Source of the DNA: Leidyana gryllorum EB-2025a
Lineage: Eukaryota > Protista > Apicomplexa
Reading direction: 5' to 3'
Assembly: GCA_048772705.1 (NCBI GenBank)
Contig: JBLWGC010000177.1
Span: forward strand, 1 to 64,000
Length of the DNA: 64,000 nucleotides
The notes below the pieces were generated by a model, which ran no database searches, was not told the DNA's origin, and saw only the letters and a program-made list of their open reading frames with translations. Both the position numbers and the translations under genes were made by a program. Below are positions 316-64,000 of this stretch, piece by piece; position 1 is the stretch's first letter, and every line of letters starts with the position of its first letter.

Positions 316-2260
316 ATGGCAGTGGACTTGGTGCCAATATGTTGGGCAGAAGTATTTACTTTCTTGCGACTGCGAGAGGTGATGTACTATAGCCGAGTAT
401 CGGCATCCGCTCGCGTGGCAGTGCGGGATGTGTTTACTCCTATTCAACTGGCCTGTGACAGTGCTGACGCGGACCATTTCCAGCGTTACGAGTATTTTGA
501 TCAATGGTTGCGTCGCACTGCTCGAAATGTCAGGTCTGTGGTCTTTGTGGAGACCACTGCAAGTGATGGCTTGTGGGAGTTCTTCAAGGCGTTATGCAGT
601 CTAGGACTGCCTCAGTTGCAGTACTGTCTGGTGCGTCTGACAAAGGAGGGCTATTCAAGACGAATAGACGGCTATTATCCGGCTCTCTCGTACTTTAATG
701 TCGCCGGGAAGGATTGGTTGCCAAATCGATTGGAGATCGAGATCGACGCGCCGGCGCTCAAATATCTCATACTCCGCGGGGCAGATGTACCAAACTGCAA
801 GACTCAATTGATGGAGGGCTTAGCAGAGGAAATGGAACTGGTGGGTTGGCGGAACTCTGTCATCATTACCAGGGACGAATGGAAGGAAGTGTTGCCGGAA
901 GGGCCTTCGAACGTGGACATCTCCGATATCGTGATCCCTCCATCGAGCAGCCGATGTATTTACAGCCACGTCGAACTGCCTCATAGACTCGTGGGCTCCG
1001 CTGACAAATCCTACGATGAGATTCAATGGCCAATGGATGAACGGTGAGTTTCCAGTACTCTCTATCTGAGCTCAATTCCTTTCATGCAGACGTATCAATG
1101 CCTTCAAAGTGTGCGTTCCGAGGTTCTGGCATCGCTTTCGAGCGAACTTGTCGGACCAAATAGAGAGGCTGTTGTGTGACATTGAATCCTTCGTCACAAT
1201 AAGCTCAGATTGCAGCAATCGTGTCGAAGCCTGGGAGGAGCTCTTCCGGACGAGAGATATCGAGAACCTGCCCAGCTGGGTCGACTATCTCCCCGCCGTG
1301 CACTTACTTCACGGACGAGTGGGGTCGCAAGTTGCACAGCGCAATGAAACTCTCATCACGAGACCGGGACATTCCAACTTACCGGGCTCGATCGCCGAGT
1401 ACGTACTGGAGGACCTGCGCAGCTTGGTACGGCGTATCAAAGGTACCAAGGACTTGAAGAGGCTCATTCTGACATCCAGTGGATGGGAGAGGGTTAAGAA
1501 AATCTCCTCCATCCACATATCCCCCGATTGTGCGGGGGTCTGGTTGGGGTCCACACAGAATTTGCCCAATGGACCCCTCACAACGTTTCGTTTCATCCAG
1601 TTAGTCACGCATGGTAACATTGAGTACGCGGTTTGCCATGATCCAGTGACCAAATCGAGCACCATCTTTTGGACCTTTCTCGCCATATATACTCTCAAGA
1701 GACAATATGGGCTGAGTCTGCGCCTGGCCATGCAGATTGTCGGGTACTTCCCTCGCCCGTGGTCCCAACTGCTCCTGGAGTCAGTCTCCGGAAACGTCAA
1801 AGAAGACACTCTCAAGATGGCCCTCGACTACATCAACGTCAGGGTGCCGGAGACCTTTATAAAGTTCGGAATGCTCGGCGGCTGTACCGAGGACGAAGTG
1901 GAAGATCCATGGTGGCACTGGCTGGCTGACAAGGTATCCTGTCGACGGTGCTATGTCGGGGGCGTTGGGAAACTGGTACCCTTCGAGCGACGCCACTTCC
2001 AGCGGTGGTACTCAGAATTCTTGGACTCCACTTCACCGGAGGCAGTTTCTCTCGTTGAGCATCTCCCGTTCTGCATGATAGGGCACCTCGACACACATAA
2101 CGATTGGTTCCTGCGACGGATCTTTGAACGCAACTTTTTGGATCTCAATCGCTGGGGTGTCCCGGCCAAATTCCTTCCCACAACACTCCATCCCAAGTGG
2201 ATGGAGAAAGTTCCGAATGTTCCTCTGTCCGATGTTTTCTGCCGATGCCCTCATCCCTAA
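316..2260 (+). CDS. F-box/LRR-like family paralog 1 (2 exons, ~632 aa)
   Basis: ATG at 316 after an in-frame TAA at 265. F-box-like start (CWAEVFTFLRLREVMYYSRVS) and family motifs WLRRTA..V, LGLPQL, IDAPALKYL, LPSWVDYLP, YFPRPWSQLLLESVSG, FQRWY, LNRWGVP. Intron 1044-1089 (GTGAGT..CAG, 46 nt, phase 2) joins ORFs 271-1047 and 1109-2260 in frame. Confidence 0.8.
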
Positions 2261-6881: not shown

Positions 6882-6953
6882 TCTTCGACGAACAACTGGG
6901 TCGCAGCACGAAAATTGAGATCTTCCGAAAATGATCAACAAGAACGACAAAAA

Positions 6954-43106: not shown

Positions 43107-44967
43107 ATGAGTATGTTGTGGAGTCAAATCTTATCGTTTGTACCCTGGCGAGAATTACCTCGCATGGAGGCAGTATGTAAATTGTGGCGAGATTGTATCG
43201 GCTGCCAAGTTGCTGCGGTGAATATCCGAATAGGTGCTGAGGATTCCTTATTGTTCTCCCATTGGCCACGAGCCACCCAGCTCTTGAGGCGATCTGCTTC
43301 TGTGGTTAGAACTTTGGAGATTGGTGGGTACTGGGCAACCGAGAAAGCGTGGGATGTATTGGGGTTGCTACTGTCGATTGGAATGCCCGAACTGCGTCGT
43401 TTGGTGTTGTCATGCTCAATGCCAAAATCAAGACGGGGGCTGATCGAGGCTGATCTGCCATCTTTGGAGTACTTGTTGGTTCCGTGGTGTCCCCCAGGAA
43501 ATAGGAAACTTCTATGGATGAGATTGCGTGCGCCTAAACTGCGGATGGCGGGCGTGTCCAGGGGATGTGTTTATCTTGTGGAGACTGAGTTGTTCACAGA
43601 GGATTTGCAGCAGAGACTCGCGACCGTGCGCCGATATCCTCATGACCTGATTGTGTGCAGTGACTTGGAAGCCGGGTATATCACATATGAGACGACCGCG
43701 AAAAGGGTCCTCACGTCGGGCTGGAGGCTGCCGGTGAGCGAATGGGAGGCGGTATACGGTGGAATCGAGTGTGGTGCTGGTTTCAAAGAGTAAGAGTGAT
43801 GGAGGTGAGCAGGTTGTATTTGTCTGTAGGGGGTTCGAAGTGGGGCAAAGTATGGCCCATATGTACTCCAATGACGTGAAAAAGCGATTTCCGGAGAGTA
43901 TCTGGTGGGTGATGGAAAAATGGCCCGATTACGTGACCATAATTGGGGATTTGTTGGCTTGGGAGCGGTGGCATGAGGTATCGACAGGTCGGTCTCCGTT
44001 TGATCTACCGTATTGGTTGCGTGGGTGTTCCCTGGGTCGGCGAGAGCGAGTGTTTGAGGAAAGGGAGAGAGTTGTTAAGTGGGGTGGCGAGGACGAACTG
44101 GACGATCGGTTTGGTGCGGGAGATTGGTCAAAGATCGAGTATTTGATTGGTGATGAGGAGCTTCTAGGGAATTCCGAAGTAGCTGTCTTACCTGACTTCA
44201 ATGCATTGACTCAGCTGAAAAGGATTGAACTTCCGGAGGCTGAGTGGACACATCTTCACTCTAGTATGTGTCCCATGGATTGGCCAAAGGAGTGTGTAGT
44301 TCACATGAACTCGACAAACAATTACATTGTGGAGTCGGTAACTCTGACTTTGCAGTTGCTTAAGATTGTGGTTGAGTGTGATATCAACTCGTGGGCGGTC
44401 ACTGAGATTTTGGATAGCTCCGAAGCAGTGTTCGGTTTGTATATGATTTTGTCGAGGCGACATTGGTTCAAAGGGAGGTCGGAGGACTCTCACAAGTTGA
44501 AAATCAGATTCGAGGCTGTGGCTGCCTTTCCGCTCGTTTTTCGTCAGGCAGTACTCGAATTGGCATCTGGGGATGTCAAATTGGAGACGTTGAGAGACTT
44601 GTTGCGGTTCCACAAAGTCAGTGACGTTGAGAAGGTGATTAATGTGATGAGAGAAGGGAGTCAGGACGATTTGGCTGCGAATTGGGTATCAATCTGGGAG
44701 TCTGTACGTGAGTGCTCATTCACTGGGCTGCCGCCTGGACTACTCAGTCCTGACGGGAAGAGGAATTACTTTCAGTGGTGTGACCAGCTGCGTTCCCTAA
44801 ATGATCTCAATCGGACAGGTCTGCCATGGGCAGACGTCGAAGCAGAAGTTTGGTTGGGCGATCTAGCGCGGAATGAAAAGTGGTATACAAACCTTTTCAA
44901 TGAAGGCAATTTTGATGAACTGAAGGCTTGGGGAATCCCGCTGAAGATTCCTTTCATGCTGCCGTAA
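43107..44967 (+). CDS. F-box/LRR-like family paralog 2 (2 exons, ~606 aa)
   Basis: LWSQILSFVPWRELPRMEAVCKLWR (F-box-like), LRRSASVV, IGMPEL, LPSLEYL, LRAPKLR, LPYW, WPKEC, LELASG, LKAWGIP. Intron 43790-43829 (40 nt, phase 2). Confidence 0.82.
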
Positions 44968-45247
44968 AGCATCCAGTCAACAACGCTTCTAATTAATTAG
45001 CCTTCAGTAAACGGGCTCCGTCGTCACACGTATCAGACGTGATCGAAAATAACAGATACATGCGCCAACGCCTTCCATTCTCCTCGCGCTTCCTCCTTCC
45101 TTCCCCGAAGCACACCTTCGATTAACAAACCTTCAAAGTTTTCGCGTCGTATCTGGACGCTTCGGACCTTTCGTACAACATAACATGTATCAACGCAAAC
45201 CTTCCAGACGAGGGAAAGAGCCGTCCTCCCCGCATATACTTTAGTAC

Positions 45248-45826
45248 TCAGAATCCAGCTGGACCCCCCCAGTGACCGCCCTCGTGAGGAGGCGGACCGC
45301 CCCAGTGACCGCCTTGATGAGGAGGCGAACCGCCCCAGTGACCGCCTTCATGAGGAGGCGTTGGGGCACAATCCTGGCACTGCTGCTGCCTCTGCGAAGC
45401 AGCACGGTGCTGCGCCGCCACCTTTGCCGCGGCCTTCACCAAAGGTACAGCGGCTCTGGCCAACGACGTAAATGAGGACAACTTGCTCGGCGGACTCTTG
45501 CCCGCACCGTTGTTTCCCCCAGGCATTCCACCGGGCACTCCGCCCATACCTCCTCCCGGCATTCCACCGGGCATTCCGCCCATACCTCCTCCCGGCATTC
45601 CACCCATACCTCCTCCTGGCATCCCATCGAAGCCACCATGTGGGGGTCCGCCAAAGTTGCCGTGTGGGGGTCCGCCAAAGTTGCCGTGCGGGGGTCCGCC
45701 AAAGTTGCCGTGTGGGGGTCCGCCAAAGTTGCCGTGTGGGGGTCCGCCAAAGTTGCCGTGTGGGGGTCCGCCGAAGTTGCCGTGTGGGGGCGCACCCAGA
45801 TCTGCGGGTCCAGAGGGCATATGCAT
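45248..45826 (-). CDS. Gly/Pro/His-rich repeat protein, 192 aa
   Basis: ATG and TGA closely bracket the repeats: (PPHGNFGG)x6, GGMPG blocks and GGHWGG x3. The strand was chosen on start/stop placement. Confidence 0.6.
   Translation of the reverse strand: MHMPSGPADLGAPPHGNFGGPPHGNFGGPPHGNFGGPPHGNFGGPPHGNFGGPPHGNFGGPPHGGFDGMPGGGMGGMPGGGMGGMPGGMPGGGMGGVPGGMPGGNNGAGKSPPSKLSSFTSLARAAVPLVKAAAKVAAQHRAASQRQQQCQDCAPTPPHEGGHWGGSPPHQGGHWGGPPPHEGGHWGGPAGF
45266..45360. repeat. 33-nt coding tandem repeat, ~3 copies
   Basis: CCCCAGTGACCGCC..TGAGGAGGCG units, encoding PPH(E/Q)GGHWGG on the minus strand. Confidence 0.9.
45638..45790. repeat. 24-nt coding tandem repeat, ~6.3 copies
   Basis: Unit GTGTGGGGGTCCGCCAAAGTTGCC, near-identical copies. 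Confidence 0.95.
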
Positions 45827-46340
45827 CTTCTCTAGATCTACTCAAATATGTGGGAACCAAGTGGGGAGTAGGAGTGATTCTTTCACTGTCGTCGTTTTGT
45901 CTATTGCTCACTCGCTGGGTCACCTCCAAGCAGATAGCCCTATCATCAGCCTCGTGGTCTATCCAAACGAGCAAGAAATCCAACACTGATCCTGAGCCAG
46001 ATTATTTAGAAGACAAGTTTGCTTCCACATCTGGTGCACATCTGGTAAAAAGGATCGGCACGTGCCTGTGCCTGCCCTGCCATCGTGCCATTGATCCCCA
46101 TCTTGACATGAGGGAGTGGTGATCTCAAGTGCTGTTGTCCCGGTGTTTGTGGACGTGTGTGAAAATGGCGTGTGGCACACGAACTGACGTGAGACGCGCT
46201 GTCATGTCTGATGGCTTCAGCCTGGTGTCTGAGAGATGTGCTAAACCTCTGTGACTGTCTGGTGATTGAATGGAGTGGTGGGGGTGATGGGGGGATTTCT
46301 GGTGGTCGGTGTATTGGTGGTCTTTTTTTTGCATCCCGTG

Positions 46341-48417
46341 ATGGGAGCAACGCCAAGAAGGGTATCGGGGAGGAAGAAGGAATCACCGCGAGGTGTGGCT
46401 GAAGTTCCAAAGGCATATTGTCTGAATTATGAACAGTGGAATCGCGTGGTGGATTTTCTGGAACTGAGCGAAGCGCCACGAATAGGAGCCATCAGTAAAT
46501 ATTTCCGGAGGTTTTTGAGTAAAGGGATTGGATCGCAATCAATAAGAGTTGACAGTGATGTTTGGAGTGTATTGAGCGGATGGACGGGCCGAGAAGCGTG
46601 GATGCGGCGGTCGGCTTTGACGGTTCATGCGCTGTGTTTGACTTTGGATCGTGATCTGAGTGGTCCGGACTCTGTGTGGGACTTCTTTCGCATGATGATG
46701 GCATTAAAGTTGCCGAAGCTGACGAAATTAAAAATCTTTGTTGAGGAAGGGCTTCAGTTCGACGATCGCGATGACGAATTGTGTCTTCGGAGGTGTCCGG
46801 AGGAGAAAGAAGAGATCAGATCGAGTCTGATGAAATCATCAGCCTTCAAAGCCGTTCTGCCGTCGCTGGATAGCCTATATATCATTGACACGACTCTGGT
46901 GACTCCGATTGACCTCATTTTGGAGGCGCCGAGATTGAGAGTTGTGGCCGTGAGTTGGGGTCAACTCGACCGGCTGGACACCGAATTTGTGAATAAGGTA
47001 CGGTCGAGAGTTGTGCGGGTGCCTCTGTCGGATCACCTGGTCATCATTGGTCGAGATTGGATGCCGATCAACAGTTTGTTGGGAAATCGGCTGATAATAG
47101 AGAACCATGGGATACTGCACAGTCAGTTGCCCAAGCCGGAGTCGGTGGTCAATGATGGCATAATGTGGGGCGATCACAGGCATCGGTGGCCGAGTGTTTC
47201 GAGGTGAGCGCACTTTTGTCAGTCGCAGTTTGTATTCTCTCTTCTCCTGTCACAGTGAACAGAAGGGGTTGAAGGATTTGGTGAGGGATTCGACACTGCG
47301 AATTGCCTCTCGGTATCCAGTGGAGGTTGGAGAGATATTATGGAACTTGTTGCGAGTCTGTAAGATTGATTGGAGCGCTGACCTCCCGCCTCCCGCGGTT
47401 CAGTGCTTCCACAAGACGCCCCGGATGTTTGATGACTTGCCCGAGTGGCTGGAGGAGGTACCGATAACGCGGTATATGGCGGTGCCGGATGAAGAGCCTC
47501 CGCTTCTCATCACTCAAGTTGTGAGGCAACACTGGTGTTCAGGCGGATCATTCTGTGAAGAATTGGGGCGGCCCACGAGGGACGTTGTTTATCAGCGGCA
47601 GTGTGGCGGTTTGAGGGGCAGAAAGATCGACAGTCTCCGAAGAGTGGAGTTGAGTATCTGGGAATGGGAGGATCTGTCGGTTTCGATGCCAAAGCTGCAG
47701 TTGCCGCCCAGAACGGTGTGCATCGCAGTGGGGCAGCCCCACTTTGAACCCGAGCTCGGTGGGCCGCCGGGTTCTGTGATGGCGTTTCGGTGGTTGAAAA
47801 CATTGGAGAGATGGAACATTCAGTATGTGGCGATCCGAAGCTTTGACTCCACGGCAGCTATCTTTTGGAGCTATTTGGTGGGTTCAACAATCAAACAGCG
47901 GATGGATAGAGCGGTTCGGTGGTGTCTAAAGAGCACAAAATACTATCCGCCCCTTTGGTCAACACTCATTCTGGAGCTCGTGTCAGGAGAGTACTCTGCG
48001 GAGTCTCTGCGGTCACTGTTCCGATATATCCAAGTAGAGCAAATGAACAGATTTGTCACCAAGTTGTGTTGGCGGGAACAGGAGCTCCTGAAACGTTGGG
48101 CGGGTTTGGACGCCTATGTCGCTCTGCACACCTTTAGGCCCATTCGGGTTGGGGCGCTCAGGGGGAGTTGGAAGGCCAGTTTCGCTCGTTGGTATCGTGA
48201 GATTCTCGCCGAGACGGAGCCCGAGTCTATCGTTCCCACTTTAGGCTACAGAGCCAATACCAGACAGCGTTCGCTTCTTCATCTCGACTGGTTCGCTCAT
48301 CGGTTCAGCCACGATCGGTTTAAGTCGTTCGCTAATTGGGGAGTTGGGTTGATAATACCCGCTGTATCAGAGACGGTCCAGAAAGGTCTCACCACAAAAA
48401 CTCAAGCAGCACATTAG
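46341..48417 (+). CDS. F-box/LRR-like family paralog 3 (2 exons, ~674 aa)
   Basis: WNRVVDFLELSEAPRIGAISKYFR, WMRRSALTV, LPSLDSL, LEAPRLR, LPEWLEEVP, LRRVEL, IFWSY, LILELVSG, FARWY. Intron 47204-47255 (52 nt, phase 2). The start may lie further upstream. Confidence 0.82.
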
Positions 48418-48546
48418 GGGAGTCGAAGACTGACTCCAACTTTCAATGGAATTCATCAATGTATGGCTGGCTCATTGGAAATGGGCTACTTTTTCAATAA
48501 CCTGCGTCACAACCCTTTTTGCCCACAAACCATAGGAACCCTCAAA

Positions 48547-50415
48547 ATGGACTCATTCACCCATGTGACACTCTTTGAGCGCTTCGTACACCAAATACTC
48601 CAATTCGCACCGTTGAAGGATTTGCCCCGCCTTTCTCATATCTCCCGGTCCATTCGTCACACAGTCTTACACCGGCTGGCGTCGCAGTCCATTGTGATCG
48701 ATGAAGTGTCGTCCAGACGAGTGGTTATGCGATGGACCGGAATCCACGATTGGTTCCGACGGTCGGCCCCAATGGTGGAGAAATTAGTTCTACACGAGCG
48801 CATGGATGGCCTCGGATTGGAGCTGTGGTCAACATTTATCACATTGTGTGAGTTGGGTATGCCTAATGTTCGCCACATTAGTCTGCGACTGAGGACCATT
48901 GATGAGGAAATATGCACTTTTGACCTCCCCCAACTCGTCTTCTTCGTTTGCATTGTGGCTGAGCGACCCCGATGCCCTTATCTTTTCACCCTCAACGCTG
49001 ACGCACTCAACACCCTCGTGTTGGCTGCAACATGTATCAACATCGACAATCCGTTGGTGAAAGAGGCTGAGATCCTCGAGGAAACACACGGCCCCGAAGC
49101 CCGCTGGTACGACTTTGTCGTCATCACACGCTCGCCTATCGACAATTCGGCCACAAGTCTTGTGGTGAACACCACACTTGACCCTATGGCGACCTCCAGT
49201 GATAATGGAGTCTTCCGAGCCTTCTTTAAAAAGTGGGAAAAGACGTATTACTGGAGGGATCCCCTCCCTTTTCCCACTCGGGAGGAGTTCTCGTAAGTGT
49301 TGGTTGACACAGTTGAGATTGCTGCGATCTCCCTTTGCAGAAAGTTGCTGAATCGGTGCCGGGAGAGCTCGCAGAGCATTGAGGAGCAATACGGACCTCT
49401 GGTTCGCCAATTCATTTGGGACGCTCTGCAAGCAATCCCCGGCGTACTCCATTGTCGGAGGTGGAAGGACATAAAATGTCATCGCAATCTCTCATTGGTC
49501 CCCGAATGGATCAAAGCTCTGCCGGTCGCCTCTGACCCCGGTGGCCGGTTCGCGATGATGTGGGTTCAAAACTCGCCGACCTCTAATAAGCCCATCGACC
49601 AAATAGAGGACTTTGTTCGGCCCGGACGGCAGGGCCTTCGACGGTTGCCATTCCCCTATTTTGACAAGATGAAGAGCCTTAAACGAGTCGAAATGGAACT
49701 GGAAGACTGGCAGAAGTTAAGTCGGACACCGGAGCGATGCAGCTGGCCAGAGGACTGTATCGTAGTGGCTCACTGTTGGATGTTCGCGCTTGAGGATTGC
49801 GGTTGGCCTCATACTCTGATCGAATTGGTTTGGAAATGTGGGATCACTCATCTCAGTCTGAGCGGCGTCTTAAGGACGTCCGAGGAGGTTCTCAAACTCT
49901 ACGTTGCCGCCTGCCACTTGCAGATCTATCACCGCCAGTTCAGACTATGTCTCCATGCCGTCCCCTGTTTACCTCCGCTGTGGATGCGAGCCCTCCGAGA
50001 CTTGGTGAAGGGGGAGTGCACCGCAAGCACTGCCCAACACCTGCTGGATGTCGAGATGCCGGGCGACGGCCTGCCCGAGCCCCTGGAAGGCTGGTTATCA
50101 GAGAGTCCACTCTTTCGGTACGACCGGATGCGCGAAACCTATGGCATAGACTGCGAACCGGCCGCCGTTAGTCAACCGATTGGGACGCTCCCCCTTGGTC
50201 GGACGCAGCAGCTTTATGCTGATATTCTCTCCTCGCAATCCATCTTAGCCGTCCCGCACGAGGGATTCAGTGCATTGGTGGATTATGGGATCTGTCCACT
50301 CCAGTCTTCGTGGTTTCTCGAACGATATCTCGCTGGAGAGGTCGAAGAGCTCCAGGACTGGGGGGTCCAGTGGAATGTTTTCCCAAAGGTTTTGCCGACG
50401 CTGACGAATGCTTAA
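48547..50415 (+). CDS. F-box/LRR-like family paralog 4 (2 exons, ~606 aa)
   Basis: QILQFAPLKDLPRLSHISRSIR, WFRRSAPMV, LGMPNV, VPEWIKALP, LKRVEM, WPEDC, LQDWGV. Intron 49293-49340 (48 nt, phase 2). Alternative ATG at 48463. Confidence 0.82.
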
Positions 50416-50855
50416 ATCAAAATCACCCCTTTTTTTTTTGTCGGTGATCGAGAATTGATGAAGATCAACAATATTTCGGCTTTTAAGCGCCCCCGTCGGT
50501 GCGACACTGTTATGGCAAAGCAGCAAAGGGTCTCGCGTCTCTCCCCATAACAGACGTCTCGCTCAAAGTGTGTGTGTGCGTACATGATAGATGGCTTTGC
50601 GATTGCTTATTGTAATCGTCGTCGATGATGTGTCTTTGACTGTCGGCGGCATTGTCATTTGGCGAGCGAAGTTGTCGAGAGTGATGGGTTTACGCGGCGG
50701 GCGATCGCGCGATCTCAGTATGGAGGTGAGCGGACAGCGGCAGTTCGAGTCGCGGGGTAGCGCTTCATAGAGTAGTTGGCGGAAAAGAGGGATGAGTGAG
50801 GAGGCGTTCGGCATCGATTCGATTGATACGCAGAGGTTTAAGCGACGGTTAAAGA

Positions 50856-52607
50856 ATGGCAGTTGGCAACAACAAGTGTTGGAATTTGGAGAGTTTCCCA
50901 ACAGTGTTTCTCTCTCAAATTCTACGGTACCTGAGGCTTCCGGATTTGATGGTATTGGGAATTATGTTTCCATCGATTCTGGATCGATACGAGATACACG
51001 ACATTGTGATTGACACACACGACAGCGATTTGTTGTGGGACTATCCGATATTTGAGCAGTGGATGGAGGCCGCTGCAACAACGGTTCGAAGTGTGACCAT
51101 CCAAACGAAGAGTGAAGCCCCTGATGTATTCCAAGAAGAAATATTCTTGCGAGTTCTGCGTCCTCAGCTGCCTCAATTGCGCAAATTAACTTTGATAGGG
51201 AAAGTGGACTGGAATCTGATACGATCTAATTGGAGTTTCCCGAGACTGGAAGAGTTGGTGATTATGCGGGACACCTATCCTTGGCAAGAGTGCATCAAAA
51301 TCGATGCCCCCCTCCTCCATACTCTCGTCTGTCCGAGTCAGCATATCGCGGTGATAAGCACTCCCCTCCTGGATCAAATTCGATCTGAGATCCCCGTCTC
51401 GGATCTCAAGTGGCGCTTGGGACTGCTGGTTATCGCGAACAACACGTGGCATTGGGTGGATCGCGGCCTCGACTTGATCACTGCGAAGCCGAGACTGCCC
51501 CCTCACCGTATACTCCGCAACCCCTTACCGCTGATACGAGACTTTACGGACGAAAAGGTGTGGCCCACGGATCCGAGTGTTGTCGCGAAAGTACTCGAAC
51601 ACGTTCGCGAAAGTACTGATAAAATGCGTTGCCTTTTCCCACCAACAGTACGTGAAGCTCTGTGGCAATCACTGGTCACAATGCAAATCAAAAGTGATGC
51701 AAAACCTCTCGGCTGGTGCAAACTGCGTGACACTGGAAGTCTGGATCTCGCACCACACTGGCTCTCTCTTCTGCCCATCCGAGACACCCGCCAACGGAAC
51801 CGCCCGGGCGATCTCTCTGGACCACCCAGAGCGTTTCAGGACTACCGGGTTCCGCTACGTACTGTGAAACATCTGATACTGGACGATAGCCGAATCGAGG
51901 CCCGGGACACCAGCATTGAGCGAATGGTCAATCTTCAACGTGTCGAATTGGATATGGCCTCCATCAAAACCCTCTCCGCCGCCTTCCCCACACACGACTT
52001 GCTGCCATTCCCTCGCGGTTGCATGGTGATTTGCAGAGTTAACAAGTTGGAAAGCTTTTCTGCTGGGGATATCCGCACCTATGACTGGCTGTTCCACGGT
52101 CGGGTCACCCATCTCGCCCTCGGAGAGCCCTTAACGTCCCTTCGCGATGTTCTCCTAATCTTCAAAGGCCTCTGCCTCCTTAGACGCAGCACAGGCCACA
52201 CTATCCGACTGTGTGTGGCGACCGTCGGTTGTTTCCCGTTCCCCTACACCAAAGTGCTGCTTGAACTGGTCTCTGGAACCTTCTCAGAGCGGACCCTGGG
52301 GCTCGTGCACCAACTGCTGCGAGACGGGCCGGATGAAATAGATCCTGATCGAAATGTGGGGTCTCTTTGGCCCGAAGAGAGGAGACATATGCAGGATTGG
52401 TACCTCAAGATGTTAGCCTACACCGACCACAGAGGCTTCCCTTCCCGCCACACAGACTTTCCCCCCTTCACCATAGGCCATTGCCCCCTACAGTGTGATT
52501 GGTACGTGAAGAATCTCGAAAATGGATACTTTGACGAGCTCAACCAGTGGGCCATACAACCAATCCTCCCAGCGGTCCTTCCCGACCGCTGCTCCACCAA
52601 CAAATAA
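50856..52607 (+). CDS. F-box/LRR-like family paralog 5 (intronless, 583 aa)
   Basis: A single ORF carries both halves: FPTVFLSQILRYLRLPDL, IDAPLLHTL, WPTD, APHWLSLLP, LQRVEL, FPFPYTKVLLELVSG, DWY, IGHCPL, LNQWAI. Confidence 0.85.
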   Translation: MAVGNNKCWNLESFPTVFLSQILRYLRLPDLMVLGIMFPSILDRYEIHDIVIDTHDSDLLWDYPIFEQWMEAAATTVRSVTIQTKSEAPDVFQEEIFLRVLRPQLPQLRKLTLIGKVDWNLIRSNWSFPRLEELVIMRDTYPWQECIKIDAPLLHTLVCPSQHIAVISTPLLDQIRSEIPVSDLKWRLGLLVIANNTWHWVDRGLDLITAKPRLPPHRILRNPLPLIRDFTDEKVWPTDPSVVAKVLEHVRESTDKMRCLFPPTVREALWQSLVTMQIKSDAKPLGWCKLRDTGSLDLAPHWLSLLPIRDTRQRNRPGDLSGPPRAFQDYRVPLRTVKHLILDDSRIEARDTSIERMVNLQRVELDMASIKTLSAAFPTHDLLPFPRGCMVICRVNKLESFSAGDIRTYDWLFHGRVTHLALGEPLTSLRDVLLIFKGLCLLRRSTGHTIRLCVATVGCFPFPYTKVLLELVSGTFSERTLGLVHQLLRDGPDEIDPDRNVGSLWPEERRHMQDWYLKMLAYTDHRGFPSRHTDFPPFTIGHCPLQCDWYVKNLENGYFDELNQWAIQPILPAVLPDRCSTNK

Positions 52608-52869
52608 TCAAATCTGAAAAGAAAGAGAAACATTCCGTCAACGGTAATAATGACAATCATACGAGCTGATCATCTGTAAACTCAATTATCGTTAAAGACG
52701 ATCATTGAGTGTGAGTCTCTAAAAAGAAACACTCGTTTGCGGAGCGGATAACCGCTGGTAAGAACGCAACGGTCTGCTGCTGTCTTTTGGGGCCGAGCGG
52801 AGACTCAGAGAGAATGCCACGGAGGCTCTGTTAAGGTCCCTCTGTCGTCTCTCGACTCTTTCTGCCATC

Positions 52870-55800
52870 TTACAGTCCACTGGCGAAGAGTCCCTTGAGC
52901 GACCGATACGGCATCCCGAGCGAATATCCGCCCCCAACAGACTGATTGAGAGCGTCGAGACGCTTCTCCATTGCTTTCTGAAGTTGATGGATGAGTTAAT
53001 TGAATTATCACTAAGCAGTCGCCACCACCAGATCTGGGACCAAAGCACTTTCTGCCGATTTCCGGATGCGACGGTGTGTATGTGACAGTTCTTCCTCCTG
53101 AGGTTCGGCCTTTGACTGTTCTTTTCTGTGTTCGATCGCTTCCCGTTCTCTCTCACTGACCGGTTCCCCACTGACTGCCTCTGGTTCCTTCTCACTGACA
53201 GGTACTGGTTCCTTCCCACTCTCCCTCTCCCGCTCGTCGTCCGGTTTATCGTGAGTTTTGGAGGATTGTATCTTTTCTCTCTCGATCTGCTCGAGTTCCT
53301 CCTCTTCGGCCATTGACTGCTCGACGATCTCGTCGAAAGAGACGACCTTCATTAGTGGTTGTCCTGCAAAGTTCTTGGGAAGGGAGATGAAGTCCCGGCC
53401 GCGGGCCGGTCCTTTGGTGGTGGCCAATATTTTGCCCGAGTTGAAGGCTTTCTCCAAGAGGTCGGCGAAATCGACAAAGTCTTGGCGCGATGTTTGAAGC
53501 AGCCGCTGTCTCCGGTCAGTAACCATTTGGGCGGTTCGGCCATACAACCAGCGATATTTGGCCTTCCCGGCTTTGGTGACATTTGCCGTGGGATGATGAG
53601 CCTTGGAGAGCTGCTTGAGGACCTCTTCGTGAATGTCCTGGTCCGATACGGTCTCGGCGAGTCTCCTAGCGGCCTCTACGCTATCCATGAAGGCCGAATA
53701 GGACTTTTCGAGTTGAGGGTCGTTCCAAGACTGGAAGATCAATTTGCCGAGATCCTGAGACAGCGAGAGGCTCGCTCCATAGGCGCCAGTTTGTCGGAAA
53801 TGTTTGTGAATATATTCTGAGAATTTCGTCGATCATCCAGTCAGTCAGTCAGTTAGTCAGTCTTACCGCTGTGGAGGAATTTGGCGGGTATCTCCTCTCC
53901 GTGATTGATGGGAGAGTGGGGTTCTTTGTATTGTACCAACATTCGGTTCATATAGTTGTCTGTGGGTACATCGATGAAGAGACTTTCACCCTTCATTTCC
54001 GTCCTGAGTCTCGGTCTCAAGAGTTCGGCCACCGTACATTGGCGCTGGATTCTTCCCTTCTTGTTGAAACTCATATCGATGGGATCGACTCGAGACGGAG
54101 TTCTGGCGATGATGGGATCGAGGATATGTTTTTGAACCGCTTCAACAGCGTCTTTGACAGCCCAGTCGTCTGCAGTAATGTCCACAGTGTACCGTCGGTA
54201 GTCAAAGGTTTTGCGTGTAGATTCTTTGATCTCTTCGCAAAGATTCGGCCAATCAGTTTGAATCCGCTTGAGCAAGTTTTGGAGATATACGAGCCCCGGA
54301 ATACCCTCTGTCTCCTCCGCATACAATAGGGACAAACTCAAATGAGCCGTGACGGCTGCCAGAGCCTTATTGGCCGTTGATCGCACTCCGGTTTCCTCAA
54401 ATGACAGAATGGCATCGGAGATTTCCTTCTCAGCGACAAACTGGCCATATGCGCAGTAATCGTGGACCTCAAAGGCCAATTTCCAGACAATGTCCAAACA
54501 CTCTGCGAGTTCTTCGTGTCGGCACTGATCGATTGAAGAGAGTGAGAGAGAGTTACTCAAGAGTCTGTCACTTACCGCAACAGTCACCTCTCGTCCCAAA
54601 TCCAGCCGTCCAGGATCATCGACCGTCAGTCCATCAGTGTAGTCCGCCTCTTCGAATGAGTCAGTGAGGCCGCCAGTGTAATTGGTGATGATCAATCGTC
54701 GCTGGAGGGCGGTGAGCTCCGGGGTGTCGGCGCGGGAGGCCAAGACGCGCTGGAACCACAATTGATGAGTGTCGAGTAGTTCGAGATCGTTGGCATCGAA
54801 GCGAACGGCAATGTGAACCGTCTTGTTGCTCCCAATGGGGTGTGTTACTATCGGGATTTTATGGTACTCGAGAACTTCGATGGGATATTCCGGTTCGGTA
54901 ATGTTTATGGCGTCCAAAGTGATAGCCGAAGGCAAAGCAGCTTTGGTTTCGTCGGATTCGGTGTGGAGGTCGAATTCTCTCATCCGTCGCGTTGTCTCAG
55001 CTACCTCAGATATCTCTTCCGGACTCATCTCGGCCTTTCGCTCCGCCAACCACTGTTTCTCCTTTTCGAGTCTGTCGTGATCTGCATCTCTGACGGAGTG
55101 GTAGAGGACAGTGAGTCTGTCTTTGTTGTTGATCAGATATCTGCGGCGAGACGATAAATAATGAGATTCATTCGGAGACAACGTACTTTTCGATCACACT
55201 TTCGAGATACCGTGGGTTCTCGGCAATGCGAGCCGTTAGGCAGTTGTAATCCTGTTGCGGACTCGCGGCGTGGGTGATGGGCAAACCGGCGACCCAATTG
55301 TTCTGAATGATCTCGCGAACATCCGAGGCCAACCAGTCTTGCGTTGGGCCGCGCATTCGCCCATTGAACTCGAATTGGCGAATGTGAGCGGCCACGAGGT
55401 CGGTCTCGAGTCCCCGTTCGACAACGTTTTTGAGTGCCGAGAAATAGAGGGCCTCGACTCTCTTTTTGTATTCGCAGGGATCTTCGGGATCTTCGGGATC
55501 GTCAGTGGCTGCCTCGTCGCATTGCGGGATTTGACCGAGGGTGAAATCGAAAGTCATTACCCGACTCCATATCGATGCTCCACCGATTTTGATATCTTTG
55601 CCCATGTCGGCCGCTTCCAATTCTTTGTAGAAAGCCGCTGCCGGATTCCTCAACAGTGTCGCAATCATTTGTAACGCCAGTGCTGTGCACGTGCAGAAAT
55701 CTCGTATGTCTCCGATATACATTTCAATGTTGACAGAGTCCATTGGTATCGGTGATCTCGAGGAGATATTGACGTTGGCTAAGTGTATCGACTCTGCCGA

Positions 55801-56773
55801 GCGCACGTACGGGTCCGGAGTTATCAGATGCTCGGCGTCTGCAAGGAGACGGCGATGATCGGCTGTTTGCTTCTGACCGAACATCAGCTGCTCGTCCACC
55901 GTATCCAATATCTCTTTCATACCGGCCTTTTTGCCAAAGAGGTAAATCAAAGCATTGGCCGGCTGATAGAACGTTCTCAGAAACTTGACAGTGTCTTCCC
56001 AAGTCAAAGTCACCAAGTCCGACAATCGGCCCCCCGAAGTGTACTCGTTGGGCGTTCCTTTGTACAGAGTCTGCTGCATCAGTCTCATGACCTCAGCCTG
56101 GCCTCCAGATTCTTTCTGTCTCATCTCGTTGTAAACGACACCCGAGAGGGTCAAAGGGGAGTCTTCGTCTTCCAACTCATACCGCCATCCGTCATGTTTG
56201 AATAGCTCGGGCTCACGGAGGAAATTGGAATCAAAGATTGCATCAAATAGAAATCTCGCCCACAAAAGTGTCGACTGCACGCACACACTCAATTACATCG
56301 AACACAACTCGACGTACGCACCTTTGGGTCTAATGTGGTCGCGTAATACCACGTGTGTGTCCGAGCAGTCGCGGCGTTGGCCGACACTGTGGTGGCCACT
56401 CTCCCGAGCCGTTCCATATTGAATTTCCCCGGGAACTTCCGAGACCCCATCAGCAGAGAGTGCTCCAACACATGAGCCGCACCTGTTGCCACACATTCCA
56501 ACTTGACGACGACGACGACGACGGCGACTTTTTACCTTTGTGATTCTGCGCCAAAGTCTTGAAGAGTATAGATATGGAACTCTCAGCAGTCTCAAACTGC
56601 GGAATTGCCCATACAACTCTGGCCCCCGTAGCTTTATGCTGCAGCTCTGCCAGGTGTATGTCTTCTCTCAGAAAATGGGTATTGAGCCATTCGAATTCGG
56701 CACTCGCGCCCACTTCTTCTACCACCGACGATCGGGCCACCCCCAATAGGCCCCACAGCAATCCAAACTTCAT
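52870..56773 (-). CDS. Secreted M16C (PreP/falcilysin-like) zinc metallopeptidase; multi-exon
   Basis: Signal-like MKFGLLWGLLGVARS, LQHKATGARVVW, inverted zinc motif HVLEH, GSRKFP, ANAAT, HDGWRYE, SGVVYNEM, SGG, FYQPANA. The last exon is inferred to end GLFASGL-TAA at 52870. Confidence 0.88.
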
Positions 56774-57070
56774 CTTGGCACCTCGTGTGTCCCGACGCAC
56801 CCGCCAACGCACCCACAGTGGCAACCCTTTGGACGTCTCTCATCTGAGTCTCAGGGCGGGAAGAGAGCGCGGACACTCCGCGCCCCCTCGGCCGCAACAA
56901 CTTTTCTCCCACCGACAGATAGCCACAGCCATTGGAGTCTTCTTTCAGTCCAAAATAGGCGTCCACAGCCCAAAAGTCGGGGTCTACAGCTGGGTGGGGT
57001 TTACAGTGTTACCACTCTGGACCACTGTAATTTGACCCCAAAACCAGGTGGATTTAAAAAGTGGAGCAGT

Positions 57071-59170
57071 ATGTTCTTGCAGCCGTGGAGAGGCGGTCTT
57101 TTCCATTGCCCTCGTCCACAGTTGACTCCTCGACTGTGGGCTCAAGTGTTGCGATGGTTATACTTGTGGGAGCTGCCACGTCTGCAACGGGTCTCGAGAA
57201 CAATGAGATGTTGTTTGACTGATTATATAACGTCGACTCGAATTCACATCGATAGAGACTGCTGGCAAGAGTTGAAACGATGGGGTGGCAGGCCGGCGTG
57301 GCTCCAACGGTCTGCGCCCGTTGTGCACACCTTAGTGTTGAGGGGTGATGCGAGTATGAGTGACAAATTGTGGCTATTACTGTATGATTTATGTGCTTTC
57401 GGGATGCCTCAGTTGCAGAAATGTATATTAAGTCTGCACCTCCCGGATAAGCGGTGTGGAGTGAGGACGATCGAATGCAAGTTGCCGGCGTTAAAGTACC
57501 TCAATTTGGCCGGGAGCGACTTGACTCCCATCCGGTCTGCCCGATTGAAGCTCGACGCCAAAGCGCTCGAGACTTTAGTATTGACTGTTGATTCATTGAT
57601 TCATGTAGAGACGCAATTATTGGATGAGATTGCGTCGAAACTTAAGAGAGAGACAAAGGAAGAGACTATTGAACAGATCATTATCATAAATCGGGACTTT
57701 GATCACGGCTATCTACTCTTCTGGCCCCAGGCTCCCCCCTACCCGCTGACTCGGCGGTATCACAATATCACTCACTTTTGGGAGGAAGTCGGAGGAGTCT
57801 ATGCCTTAGTTCAGTTACCGAAGGCCTACAAGAAATGGGCCGGCGAATTGAGTCAGAGACGCACCAAGAAGAAGAAAAAGTCGCGGCTCCCAGGCAAAGA
57901 GCTGTGGCCTCTCAGTCGATCGTGAGTTGTGTATCTTTCCTCAACAGCCAATTCCCCCTCGCCGCACAGGAAAGTGGAAGAATTGCTGTTACGGAGTCTC
58001 TCCAAATCGAGAGAAGTTCTGGACACTTATCACTCGACCATTATAGATGCCATCTGGGACTCTTTTCCCCGCGAGGAGATGTGTGTTCGGGAGGAGATGC
58101 CTCTGCCGGGCTGGGACGAGATTGCTAAGACTCGAGACTTTCGCTTCGTCCCAGACTGGGTGGACGTCTTACCACTGTGCTACGATACGCCGCCTCGCAA
58201 CGTCCACGACGAGAGTATAGAATGGTTCTTGGGGTACGTGGATCCCGCCATGCAGAACAACTTCAAGTTCATCAAATATGTTATTGGACACATAGATCGT
58301 AATAATCCAGCGGTTGTCCTGCCGAATTGGCCCGCTTATACACATCTGCGTCGAGTCGAATTCAGCTCTGAGTCGTGGCTGCTCTTGTCGCAACAGATGG
58401 TCGATTATCCGTGGCCGAGAAAGTGTGTGACTGTCTGGAAGGGCCACTGTAGGGATTTGCCCAAGTCACCTCGCACTGCGGCCGACTGGATGCGTATCGT
58501 TAACCGATGTGGAATTCAATATGCCATTGCGGCAGAGTACATTGAAGACGCCAGTGTAGTATTTTGGACCTACATTGCAGCTCACACACTCAAGATCCGC
58601 ACAGGGAAAAGCGTTCGTGTTAGCTGCCAAGCTGTGGGTTACTTCCCCTTTCCGTGGTCCCTTCTGCAATTGGAGCTGGCGTCCGGTACCTACTCGACCA
58701 ACACTTTGTTCGCTCTGTTCCATTACATTGACAGTCGGATTGGAGACGACTATTTGCGGTGGCAGGGCAAGGACTGGGAAGGGTATTGGAATTATATATT
58801 CCCCCCGCGTATATTGACTGCGTGTGATCTGAAGGTGCGACGAGTCGGGGGGCTCGTCGGCACTGCGAAGCGCGAGTTTTATCGGTGGTACCGAGACATG
58901 CTGGACGCAACGCCGAGCAAGTGTTGGCCGATGGACGATTTCGACGACCGTTGTTGCATTGGGCGTTTCTGTACCTTCTCTGATTGGTTTGTTCGCCATT
59001 TCAAAGCGTTGCGGTTGGAGGATCTGCGTAAGTGGGACATCCCCGTCCGACTTCCAACAATGCTCCCCACTGAGGAGCAACTGTCCTCTCCCCAGAGCCC
59101 CCCCAAAACAGTAGCAGATCCATATGATGCTCATGAGTTGTGCTTGAACTCTCAGTTCGGCTATCTATAA
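57071..59170 (+). CDS. F-box/LRR-like family paralog 6 (2 exons, ~683 aa)
   Basis: LWAQVLRWLYLWELPRLQRVSRTMR, WLQRSAPVV, FGMPQL, LPALKYL, VPDWVDVLP, WPRKC, VFWTY, YFPFPWSLLQLELASG, FYRWY. Intron 57922-57969 (48 nt, phase 2). Confidence 0.85.
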
Positions 59171-59266
59171 GACATTCATTTCGCTGCGCTGAAACAAACA
59201 AAATCATCTCCCGCGAAAAGAGTGTGCGACTTTCCACAGTACCACGACCACAACAAACATTTGACA

Positions 59267-61249
59267 ATGACCACAAACATTTATGTGTGGAGACAGATAT
59301 TGCCTTACTTCCACTTTACAGAATTCGCAAAGCTTAGCACTGTCAACGTATTCTTTCGAGATTACTTGCTGCGAGAAAGCGTTTCCAAAGACATTTTGGT
59401 CAATGAGGACATTTGGGAAATCATTAGAGACTGGAGAGGGCTGCAGAGGTGGGTGGAGCGGTCAGCGGCGGTGGTCGAACGGCTATACATCTCGGGTTCC
59501 CCCGCGAGAGCTGCAGAGCTGATGGACCTGATCGCTACGTTCATGAAACACCCTTTTCCTCGAATGCGCATATGTTCTCTCAAGGTACACACTTGGGACC
59601 TTCTGCAAGACGATTGGCGACCAAAGCCGTTGCGCATCTCGGCTCCCGAGTTGCGCATCCTGGACATCACTGAATTGCACACCTGTACTTGGAACGAGTA
59701 CCACACACTGGGAACCAAGCAACATACCGTACAGCTGAGAGTTGATGCTCCAAAACTCGAGTCTCTCATCTGCACCGCGAGAGGATTTCGGTCCATCGTC
59801 ACGCAACTCACTGATGTGGAGTTGAAGGACAAAGTGAACTTCCATTGGGCCGGTGGAACGCCCATACAAGTCATAATCAGCCGAAATCTTCCACACGGAC
59901 ACTGCCTGACGACCCAACACCGCCGTGCCCTTCCGCCAACGGAAGGTCTTGTCTTACTGACACAGGAGATACCGGGGGACCTTCGAGCGCGTCTTATGGA
60001 CATTCAAGAGCGGGACAACTTGATGAACACAACGTGGCCGTCAACACCAGCGTAAGTCGTCAAGTCTTTGTCGTCCCCGACATCATTTGATTGTAGAGAA
60101 ATAAAGGACTTACGACAGATTTTCGCCGAGACCGTTGCTGAGAATGCCGAGAAATACTCTCCGGAGATCGTCGAGGCATTGGCGATGATGGTTCCAAGGG
60201 TCCCCATAACAGTCGAGATTGACGACACCACAGAGACGGCTTGGCATAAGCTGGCGCGCACATGTTATATAGATAGCCTCCCCCCCTGGGTCGAAGTGCT
60301 GCCGGTGCGTCAAGGGGGAATGCCGTCGAACGAAGAGGACATCCCGATTGTGAACAGGTCCGATACATTCACGTGGAAACGTGACAGCTTCAAGATGGTA
60401 TTCTGGCCCCGAGGGATCCATTACATATGCTCGGCCGATGTCACGTTTGACGGCGCCAATCAGTTTGCTCTCGTGCAGTCCAAATTCGTCAATCTCAAAG
60501 CCATCCAGCTCGATTATCAAATGTGGCGACAACTCAAGACCCGTCTCGGCTCGATTACATGGCCAAAAAACTGTCTGGTGGTAGCCCGCGTTGACGACAC
60601 TGTGCTGCCAACCACCCACGAGTTGGCTGTCGAGCTCAGCAACCTTGTCGACCTGTGCAAAATTGATCGCCTTAACATCGTCGGTGTCATCAAGAACTGC
60701 AATACGATATTCTGGACATATATCGCAGCACATCTCGTGCGCAAGCGGTCTGGGCGATCAATACACATTACTCTCCAAGTCACAAGTTGTTACCCAAAAA
60801 TCCATCGCCAAATGCTCTTGGAGTTGACTCAAGGCTCCCTCCAAGCTGCGACGCTGGAAGCTGCCTGCCGACAACTCGGGGCTATCGAGATTTCACACTG
60901 GATCACCAAAGATCAGCACCTCACCTCCACTGACTGGTCTGAGGCCGCTCTGACTGTCAAATGTAGAATGTCCCGATCTGTGGGGGTCTGTTGGACTACC
61001 GGGCGTCTGAGACTCGACTTTCATAATTGGTACATAAAGATGATCCATTCAACACGAAGAGATTTCTATGTTCGTGAACTCGATCTAGTCTTCTCCGCCT
61101 GGCACCAAGAAGTAGGTTGGAGCGATTGCGTGATCGGGGATATGCCCTTGAATAGCGAGTGGTTTTTGACGCAGTTCTGGTCGCCAGATAGCAATCTCGA
61201 CTCTCTTAGGCAATGGTGTATCCCTTTCACCCATCTACCCGCTTACTAA
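59267..61249 (+). CDS. F-box/LRR-like family paralog 7 (2 exons, ~645 aa)
   Basis: VWRQILPYFHFTEFAKLSTVN, WVERSAAVV, VDAPKLESL, LPPWVEVLP, WPKNC, IFWTY, LLELTQG, FHNWY, LRQWCIP. Intron 60052-60096 (45 nt, phase 2). Confidence 0.83.
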
Positions 61250-61617
61250 CCTATGATTTTTGGGTCACACCCACACGCGCGCACACACACACGCACAAAG
61301 TTACACTTTGCAAATTGCGTTTGTTGGATCGATGCTCAAGATCTTTTTTTCCCCTTCTCTCCCCTCCTTCTCCCGCTCCCCCCTCTCCAGACCGGCCCCC
61401 TAAGGGTGTCGCGCATCCGTCCAGGAGAACTCCCAACAGTCAGAGGAGCCCAGTTCTCACCCATAACGATCCTAAGGGAGCGAAAATTGGGCGCGCTGCC
61501 GCGTCATGTGTTCCATTTAACGCATCACTCTTCCCCCACAGACAGACGGGTGTTGAACAAACTTTCGCGTTCATTACTACACACACTCTTAAACCACTTA
61601 GGGCACAGCAAGGGAAG

Positions 61618-61657
61618 TAACCAGTTAGGAGTATCTCTAACCAGTTAGGAGTATTTC
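61618..61657. repeat. 20-nt intergenic tandem duplication
   Basis: TAACCAGTTAGGAGTATCTC / TAACCAGTTAGGAGTATTTC, followed by a degenerate third copy. Confidence 0.85.
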
Positions 61658-61927
61658 TACCCCAGTGGGAAGCTACAAAGACTCGAGGTGTCCCTTTCCA
61701 ACGGTTGATGCAGATGTCAATACGGCTGTTGCTCGGTGTCGCGGCTTTCTTACGGAACTGGTGAGCATCCAGACTGACAAGTGGTGGGAAGGTGCAGATT
61801 GACCGATCGACCGATTGACAGATGTTGTGTTGTCAGGCGGTTGATGGGGTGCGTTCCCTGTGCTTGTAGTGTGGCTGAGACAGGTAGAGCGCTGCTACAG
61901 AATGGTAGCACAGAATGGTAGGTACCC

Positions 61928-62679
61928 ATGCGTCACGTGCAGGCCGGACATGTCATGCGTCTCCATTACTGCGCCTCATTGATTACGGTGGTGTTCGGCT
62001 TCGGGCAGCCGGAGAGTCAATTCTATGTTCAGAATCCCTGGGCGGATCCAAATTATGTGCCAGTCATATCGTGGGGGCCGATTACCCATGTCAAAGCAAC
62101 TGACACGACCCATGGGGGCCCAAAATCACGTGACACATCGACGAGGCGCGCCGGGAGTACGCAGTTACTATCGGAGCCGTTTGCGAGAACGGAGGTGAAG
62201 GGTGCGAGTACGGAGACAGATGGCGCGAGACGGAGTCTCCGGAAACGTCTGGCGAACAGCATGAGTGGGCTGACGAGGAGTCTGAGTGCGCGGATGTCGC
62301 GCAAGAAGGACAGAGCTCCTTCCGAGAAGACTGTCAAGAGACACCGTACGGATGCCGGGGAAAAGCGAAGTGAGCGACTTGGGGGTGAGGCACGCAATTA
62401 ATGTGTTTTCGGTGCGCAGGGTTTACAAAGGACTTGAAGCCGGTGATTCTGGGAGGATCTAATGTTGAGCATCGGAGACCACTCGAGCCCGAGTACCGTT
62501 ATCCAGTGATATCGAGGGCTATGGCTCAGGACCAATTGAAATTGGGATCGCAGCCGGTGCGTCAGCCGTGGGAAGAAGACACAGAGGCTGACGTGGAGGC
62601 GTGGCTGAGGCGGATGAATATGATTGTGGCAGAGAGACGAAAGAGTTTCAGTCAGCTGGACGCGGAGTCATCGTCGTAA
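61928..62679 (+). CDS. Small putatively secreted basic protein (2 exons)
   Basis: Hydrophobic N-terminus (YCASLITVVFGFG). A phase-1 intron ending at 62419 (donor 62370 or 62385) joins ORFs 61928 and 62401. Confidence 0.55.
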
Positions 62680-62769
62680 TTGAATGAATGCATCATGTGC
62701 TGCGTATGAATGGTGATTTGGGCTCGCATGAGACTCACATGACACATATTCTGTGGCTCAATTCACACA

Positions 62770-64000
62770 ATGCATTTACCCCCAGTTTACTACGCCTTCA
62801 TCTTGGAGTATCTGACTATTGATGAATTCCCTCGATTTCGAGGAGTCTCGAGAAACTGCCGACGGGGAGTCGATCGTCATTTAATAACCCGAAAGATCAA
62901 CATCGATAACGACCACGCGAATAGCCCCCAACTATTCGATCTCCGCAATTGGCCGCATATGAATGACTGGCTACGCCGCTCGGCCATTCCCCTCGAAGAG
63001 TTGACACTCCGAGAGGACATGACCTCCCACGGTAGTTGTTGGGACGTCTTTGTCACTTTGGCTCGTGTTGGACTCCCAAACTTGAAGAAACTCACAATGA
63101 CTGTGAGATTCCCAACAAGCTATGACATGACGAGTCTCCTGGAAGTCTCTCTCCCACAACTGACTTACTTCAAGTACGAAGACGCCGACCCCTTCTCGAA
63201 AAAGGTCGCGCCTCTCTGGAGACTCAGCGCGCCCAAACTCAAAAGACTGATCATGTCGGCTACGTGTCTCGACACCATTGATGCAGAACTGGCCAACCCA
63301 TACCGGCGCCAGCTCCGCGGCTTCCGCGGGGGCGAGACACGCAATAAAACCCGTTTCGTCTTTGATCGCAGTTTGATTGATGGCTATGCTGCCTTTATGT
63401 ACAATGACAGAGAACAAGACGTCAGTGTCGCTCGTTGGGACGAAGACGGTCTCACGTTCCGAGCCGAACCCCCAAATGTCCACTCGCCTCTCAGCAGAGA
63501 GGACTCACCCGACTTGCACACCAATCAAGTCTTCGGCCTGGAACTCAAGAGTCCAGAGTATTGGACCAAAGATCCCGAGCGGTGAGTTCTGCGCGGCAAT
63601 CTTCAGTTTGATATATTTTCTTCACTTTCTCCTTCAGAGTAGAAGAAACCCGCATGGGACTCATCACTTATTCGAGAAACTTCAAGTCCTCATGGCACCG
63701 TCCCATAGTCGAGGCCATTATGGACTGCAAAGGAGAATCCGTTCCTGTCACTTGGTGCAGCGGACAGCACTGGAAGTGGCGTGAACTGGCGGAGACGCAT
63801 CAAATTAAGGGTCTATTCGACTGGGTCGATGCTGTCCCGCTCGGTCACTACCTCACTGGCGATGAGGAAATCATAGAGCGGTCTGTCAGACATATGCTGT
63901 ACGTCGGAGACCAATTCCGGAGCCGCCGCTTCAAGTGGAACACTGGGTGGGAGATCGTTATCCCCAATGAGTGCGTCGAGTTTGTCGGAGACGGAGGGAT
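62770..64000 (+). CDS. F-box/LRR-like family paralog 8 (3'-truncated by the window edge)
   Basis: MHLPPVYYAFILEYLTIDEFPRFRGVSRNCR (clearest F-box), WLRRSA, VGLPNL, LSAPKLKRL. Intron 63582-63637 (56 nt, phase 2) opens exon 2 with WRELAETHQIKGLFDWVDAVP. Confidence 0.83.

Follow-up and report, generated by a model that had tools for sequence, protein, structure and literature searches.

F-box proteins of the FBXL class (SKP2/FBXL1, FBXL3, FBXL5, KDM2A/FBXL11, TIR1, and COI1) carry an N-terminal F-box directly before a β-solenoid of leucine-rich repeats (LRRs). The apicomplexans studied so far have small F-box sets, and to our knowledge a repertoire for cell-autonomous defence has not been described in this group. 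Toxoplasma has 18–19 predicted F-box proteins, four of them with Plasmodium homologues; the Toxoplasma/Plasmodium proteins (TgFBXO1, FBXL2, FBXO13/14) are SCF (Skp1–cullin–F-box) adaptors in which the F-box is degenerate and the C-terminal domain is specific to the lineage (PMC6685633, PMC11570480). In Toxoplasma, division and stage genes are under the control of FBXO1 and FBXL2. For nematodes, PMC8120010 (citing Thomas 2006) describes more than 350 F-box genes in C. elegans, in which the F-box is under purifying selection while the substrate-binding part is positively selected; tandem birth-death expansion and the same selection split are shared by the nematode families FBXA (F-box plus FTH) and FBXB (F-box plus FBA2) and by plant F-box clusters. 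Here we describe a gene family found as a tandem array in a window of 64,000 nucleotides of the gregarine Leidyana gryllorum EB-2025a (C177:1-64000; assembly of 15.5 Mb in 237 contigs, GC about 53%). The family would work like an FBXL adaptor, evolves like the conflict-driven families of nematodes and plants, and belongs to none of those sequence families.

Eight copies were found in the window where the original prediction had placed them, all on the + strand. Profile searches were made separately for exon 1 and exon 2: leave-one-out profiles scored 71–152 bits for exon 1 (eight copies) and 115–207 bits for exon 2 (the seven complete copies), while shuffled-sequence controls against the same profiles reached at most 2.5 bits, bearing out eight co-oriented paralogs. 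Pairwise identity between them averaged 22–23% (range 16–32%). The ordered motifs proposed for the family stood as a consensus, their strict forms being exact in only 1–4 copies each, and the predicted product length of about 580–680 amino acids (aa) was corrected to 583–724 aa by coordinate arithmetic. The tandem array was also present, but it runs beyond the window, with further copies at contig positions 65291, 66997, and 71041, and is broken by unrelated genes (a repeat gene at 45248-45826 and an M16C peptidase gene at 53011-56824).

A full-length structure model was built on copy 4 (50856..52607), which is naturally intronless. In this model the F-box (50886..50993, + strand; residues 1-36) is predicted to form three helices (residues 6-13, 18-27, and 29-34; predicted local distance difference test, pLDDT, 71-89) that align with FBXL F-box regions, with hydrophobic core positions conserved; behind it lies an LRR-like β-solenoid (51000..51461, + strand; residues 39-192). 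The F-box motif (PF00646/PF12937) was recovered at family level: PF00646 matched 29 of the 42 exon-1 members at E<=0.1 (best 5.4e-6), and four family members (P0008, an L061 open reading frame (ORF), C177:71035, and C224:175620) passed the Pfam F-box cut-off, below which the window copies singly fell (best, copy 1, F-box-like, E 0.0023). The best PDB matches of the exon-1 profile were KDM2A/FBXL11, SKP2, COI1, DIA2, and FBXL3, and a structure search with the first 200 model residues placed FBXL5 and FBXL3 within the top three, with FBXL17, FBXL2, TIR1, and COI1 lower. The Pfam profile, PDB profile, and structure comparisons thus bore out the F-box/LRR reading. Unlike in the FBXL class, the usual F-box Pro and Trp residues are lacking in the family (the Pro is present in only 7 of 42 members), and the LRRs do not make up the entire substrate-binding region: about 5–6 LRR strands are followed by a linker (51462..51572, + strand), which is modelled with low confidence, ends in a conserved WP and is the site of the family intron in other copies, and then by a separate unmatched domain. 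This three-part layout resembles that of plant F-box/LRR/FBD proteins (LRR_At5g56370) and fungal F-box-LRR clusters, a likeness that includes weak PF24758 matches in 3 of 42 exon-1 members and Atlas look-alikes; in contrast to the plant proteins, the gregarine C-terminal domain is not an FBD, and is much larger.

The C-terminal domain (51573..52565 in copy 4, + strand; about 330 aa) was confidently modelled as a compact α/β fold. No Pfam match was obtained among 51 exon-2 members, and a fold search with the copy 4 model gave no structural relative; the domain, unrecognised in the original prediction, remained so by sequence and by fold comparison. Neither FTH nor FBA2 was matched by Pfam in the 42 exon-1 or 51 exon-2 members, which argues for an origin independent of nematode FBXA/FBXB. 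The exon-2 profile, scanned in full with HMMER against 1.84 billion representatives, returned 13 proteins, all Logan singletons (eight traced to runs ERR10900103, ERR10900105, and SRR28734874), and no C-domain homologue in any named proteome; these statements of absence do not take in Gregarina niphandrodes (genome 13.9 Mb, modal intron 37 nt; PMC9250747) or very close relatives. Within the searchable data, therefore, the family is lineage-specific as had been proposed, the C-domain matching no described conserved family in named proteomes, Pfam, or folds. A literature search found no paper describing the family, and we infer that it is restricted to gregarines.

The paired ORFs of the original prediction were confirmed for seven window copies, which contain a predicted phase-2 GT..AG intron of 40–56 nt, whose donors read GTRAG and acceptors YAG: copy 0 (316..2260, 632 aa; intron 1044-1089), copy 1 (43107..44967, 606 aa; intron 43790-43829), copy 2 (46341..48417, 674 aa counted from the second ATG; intron 47204-47255), copy 3 (48547..50415, 606 aa, or 634 from ATG 48463; intron 49293-49340), copy 5 (57071..59170, 683 aa; intron 57922-57969), copy 6 (59267..61249, 645 aa; intron 60052-60096), and copy 7 (62770..64000, continuing beyond the window to near contig position 65000, 724 aa; intron 63582-63637). 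Copy 4, however, is one ORF of 583 aa. Since the exon-1 frame stops inside the GT donor in 38 of 38 two-exon pairs from the source genome and outside contigs, we infer that these loci are intact spliced genes and not broken ones. The F-box begins a few residues from the start in nearly all copies, and a hydropathy scan of the N-termini detected no secretory leader, with copy 2 as the sole, non-conserved exception. The claim that signal peptides are absent thus held for all copies except this one (the 46266 copy), whose upstream in-frame first ATG at 46287 adds a hydrophobic, signal-peptide-like leader (window 46287-46340; KD11 3.4); because its orthologue lacks a leader, translation from the second ATG at 46341 is more likely. 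Intracellular bacteria and viruses are known to use F-box effectors, and the gregarine might likewise deliver its proteins into gut cells of the host and take over the SCF there. Diversifying selection (see below) would fit such a host conflict, as would the possible leader of one copy, but this role is highly improbable: the F-box lies so near the start in almost all copies that there is no room for a secretory leader, and the single leader is not conserved in the orthologue. The near-universal absence of a leader suggests instead that the proteins act inside the parasite.

Genome-wide, the two halves gave 119 and 114 profile matches, the latter spread over 27 contigs, which would correspond to about 100 loci; this estimate allows for split matches and is a lower bound, and alleles could account for some near-identical copies that lie on different contigs. 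At least 36 similar copies on 13 other contigs (46–98% amino-acid identity) formed a short-branched clade, the young subfamily. Its arrays on C9, C47, C173, C186, C204, and C213 often start a few kb from the contig start, where a subtelomeric position or assembly breaks are possible. Profile searches of the genome found one Skp1 gene; two cullins scored over the cut-off, and a third matched weakly. Nematodes have expanded their Skp1 genes; in contrast to FBXA/FBXB, the present family belongs to a unicellular parasite whose 15.5-Mb genome has a single Skp1. In contrast to Toxoplasma, a single gregarine family here reaches about five times that parasite's entire F-box set. Reverse transcriptase gave at least 150 hits genome-wide, many in identical copies and in intact frames of more than 1000 aa; for an apicomplexan, this is a heavy load of retrotransposons. 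An intronless family cluster at C35:232000-256000 (frames of 660–680 aa) encloses an intact reverse transcriptase (C35:248478), and possibly consists of retrocopies or transposon cargo.

Codon tests were run on the young-subfamily copies in hand (17 for exon 1 and 16 for exon 2, of at least 36). Comparison of M1a with M2a gave twice the log-likelihood difference (2dL) as 44.3 for exon 1, with a dN/dS ratio (omega) of 3.4 on 6% of sites, and as 52.5 for exon 2, with omega 4.9 on 2.5% of sites. The signal was also obtained with indel regions masked (2dL 32 and 55), between M8a and M8 (46 and 49), and with segment-specific trees (18 and 25 for exon 1; 28, 0, and 19 for exon 2, the zero being the C-domain core); these values come from our own implementation with fixed topology, naive empirical Bayes posteriors and partial sampling, and gene conversion may contribute. 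Regional omega was 0.22 for the F-box, 0.45 for the LRR, 0.44 for the linker, and 0.50, 0.37, and 0.59 along the C-domain. Selected sites mapped to LRR strands and their following loops (model residues 71-77 and 127-129), to the linker, and to two C-domain strands (262-267 and 529-532), a mapping that is approximate because the alignments have about 20% identity. These results supported the conclusion that putative target-binding surfaces of the young tier evolve under diversifying selection. The idea of a host-pathogen type of conflict gained direct support from this combination of a conserved F-box with a positively selected substrate-binding part, although the signal lies outside the deeply diverged window array.

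The same data bear on three other explanations. The family could have been amplified neutrally, as retrotransposon cargo or by segmental duplication under relaxed constraint, as the reverse transcriptase inside the C35 cluster and the stops within the match of some off-window copies would suggest. Most copies are intact, however, those of the window have long-lived orthologues, the M2a and M8 tests reject neutrality, and the F-box and C-domain core are under purifying selection; for the whole family, neutral amplification is thus largely refuted and extremely improbable, but it may hold for single clusters. A degenerate F-box serving as a Skp1 decoy or vestige, attached to an enzymatic domain instead of acting in degradation, is very unlikely. 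The F-box scores are weak, its usual Pro and Trp are missing, and the compact C-domain has a weak partial likeness to β/α barrels and conserved Glu, Thr, and Tyr, but the F-box is the most constrained region of the protein, and most of the best-conserved positions of the C-domain are Trp, Pro, Gly, or Leu, its conservation pattern showing no invariant set of His/Cys/Asp/Ser. Finally, gregarines pair in syzygy, and a self/non-self or selfish system like Cni-neib-1 can be considered. Cni-neib-1, which destroys a sister-species enzyme, belongs to a set of 33 young nematode paralogues under positive selection (10.1101/2024.09.11.612556); the young subfamily is similar in size and selection pattern, but the nematode effect is described as arising incidentally from an immune-driven expansion, and we regard this explanation as quite unlikely.

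The window copies showed a different history. Outside contig L063 carries orthologues of copy 2 (40% identity) and then copy 4 (P0005, 38%) in near-identical order; L062 carries those of copy 6 (P0002, 32%), copy 7 (P0004, 42%), and the 66997 copy; L061 those of the 66997 copy and then the long 71041 gene (46%); and L068 a probable orthologue of copy 1 (P0003, 28%). Tree support for the pairs was 0.96–1.0, and the loss of the intron is common to copy 4 and its orthologue. Copy 3 (in L063) and the 65291 copy had no counterpart at matching positions in the outside contigs. Non-family neighbour genes were 63–72% identical to their counterparts in L066 (ERR10900127, a third run of the same series), so that family orthologues are far less conserved than adjacent genes if L066 is, as we assume, from the same species as the other outside contigs. 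Given orthologues in conserved order and few missing copies, the window array is, judging from these comparisons, an old, orthologue-conserved, fast-evolving set with slow birth and death. The description of its copies as highly diverged was therefore correct in degree, but the divergence comes from age combined with a fast rate and not from recent turnover. Retention in conserved order would also be expected if the adaptors cleared endogenous proteins at trophozoite, syzygy, gametocyst, and sporozoite transitions, and developmental roles of apicomplexan F-box proteins are documented (PMC6685633, PMC11166348). Such stage-specific proteolysis fits the old copies best, but it would not predict sites with omega 3–5 on binding surfaces or continuing tandem amplification, nor does it sit well with orthologues so much less conserved than their neighbours; for the family it is unlikely.

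An unusual member with a low-complexity N-terminal extension of 470–550 aa ahead of the F-box was found in three datasets (C177:71035, a 1372-aa frame; P0008 in L064, 1456 aa; and L061:1628-4261). Its F-box is the most canonical, over the Pfam cut-off, making it a candidate founder gene.

Based on the established knowledge of F-box proteins, the family members are probably SCF substrate adaptors. The F-box would dock on the single Skp1, and hence on a cullin-RING ligase, while the LRR solenoid and C-terminal domain, flexibly linked, would jointly grip a cytosolic or nuclear target, which would then be ubiquitinated and degraded. The old tier, represented by the window array, would be kept as orthologues across species while changing fast; in the young tier tandem amplification would be ongoing and binding surfaces diversifying. 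Diversifying selection on these surfaces points to changing targets, and the abundant reverse transcriptases in intact frames make mobile elements one class of target that is available, the alternatives being viruses or hyperparasites. From this co-occurrence, proteins of intracellular genetic parasites (abundant retrotransposons or viruses) are the leading candidates for the targets, at slightly less than even confidence. More tentatively still, the family could constitute a ubiquitin-based intracellular immune repertoire: some 100 SCF receptors with a new-fold recognition domain, destroying retrotransposon or virus proteins and with an evolutionary origin separate from that of the systems in nematodes and plants.

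Other genes of the window were also annotated. The M16C/PreP (falcilysin-like) peptidase gene inside the array (53011-56824, - strand) is multi-exon (PF08367 plus PF22516), and is not at the matching place in L063, since another F-box gene directly follows the copy 4 orthologue there. Between copies 1 and 2, the 192-aa ORF at 45248-45826 (- strand) consists of Gly/Pro/His octapeptide repeats without Pfam match; where it would stand in L068 there is a minus-strand gene of 191 aa, a likeness that is positional only. The cyclophilin at 39234-40334 (- strand) lacks a detectable form of the SYF2 domain carried by alveolate relatives; its best named full-length match is from Blabericola migrator (49% over 94%), with which it groups (support 0.998), and on this basis the genome is most likely that of a terrestrial eugregarine. 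Divergently oriented from it is an 862-aa ORF (40434-43022, + strand) whose C-terminal region is rich in Gly and which has no Pfam match; both genes are found in synteny in L066 (63% and 72%). An aspartyl protease-like gene (TAXi_C; 32593-34185, + strand), a PhoD-like phosphatase (15479-16549, - strand), and a C2-domain gene (5532-6950, - strand) were also noted.

The strategy is known; the lineage, the scale, and the C-terminal domain, confidently modelled and without structural match, are new within the reach of our searches. About 100 putative adaptors with the selection signature of nematode and plant families would mean that this strategy also emerged in a parasite with a compact genome. 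The LRR strands and the two C-domain strands are named surfaces for target hunting, and the old orthologous and young amplified copies would offer a built-in comparison of stable and arms-race adaptors.
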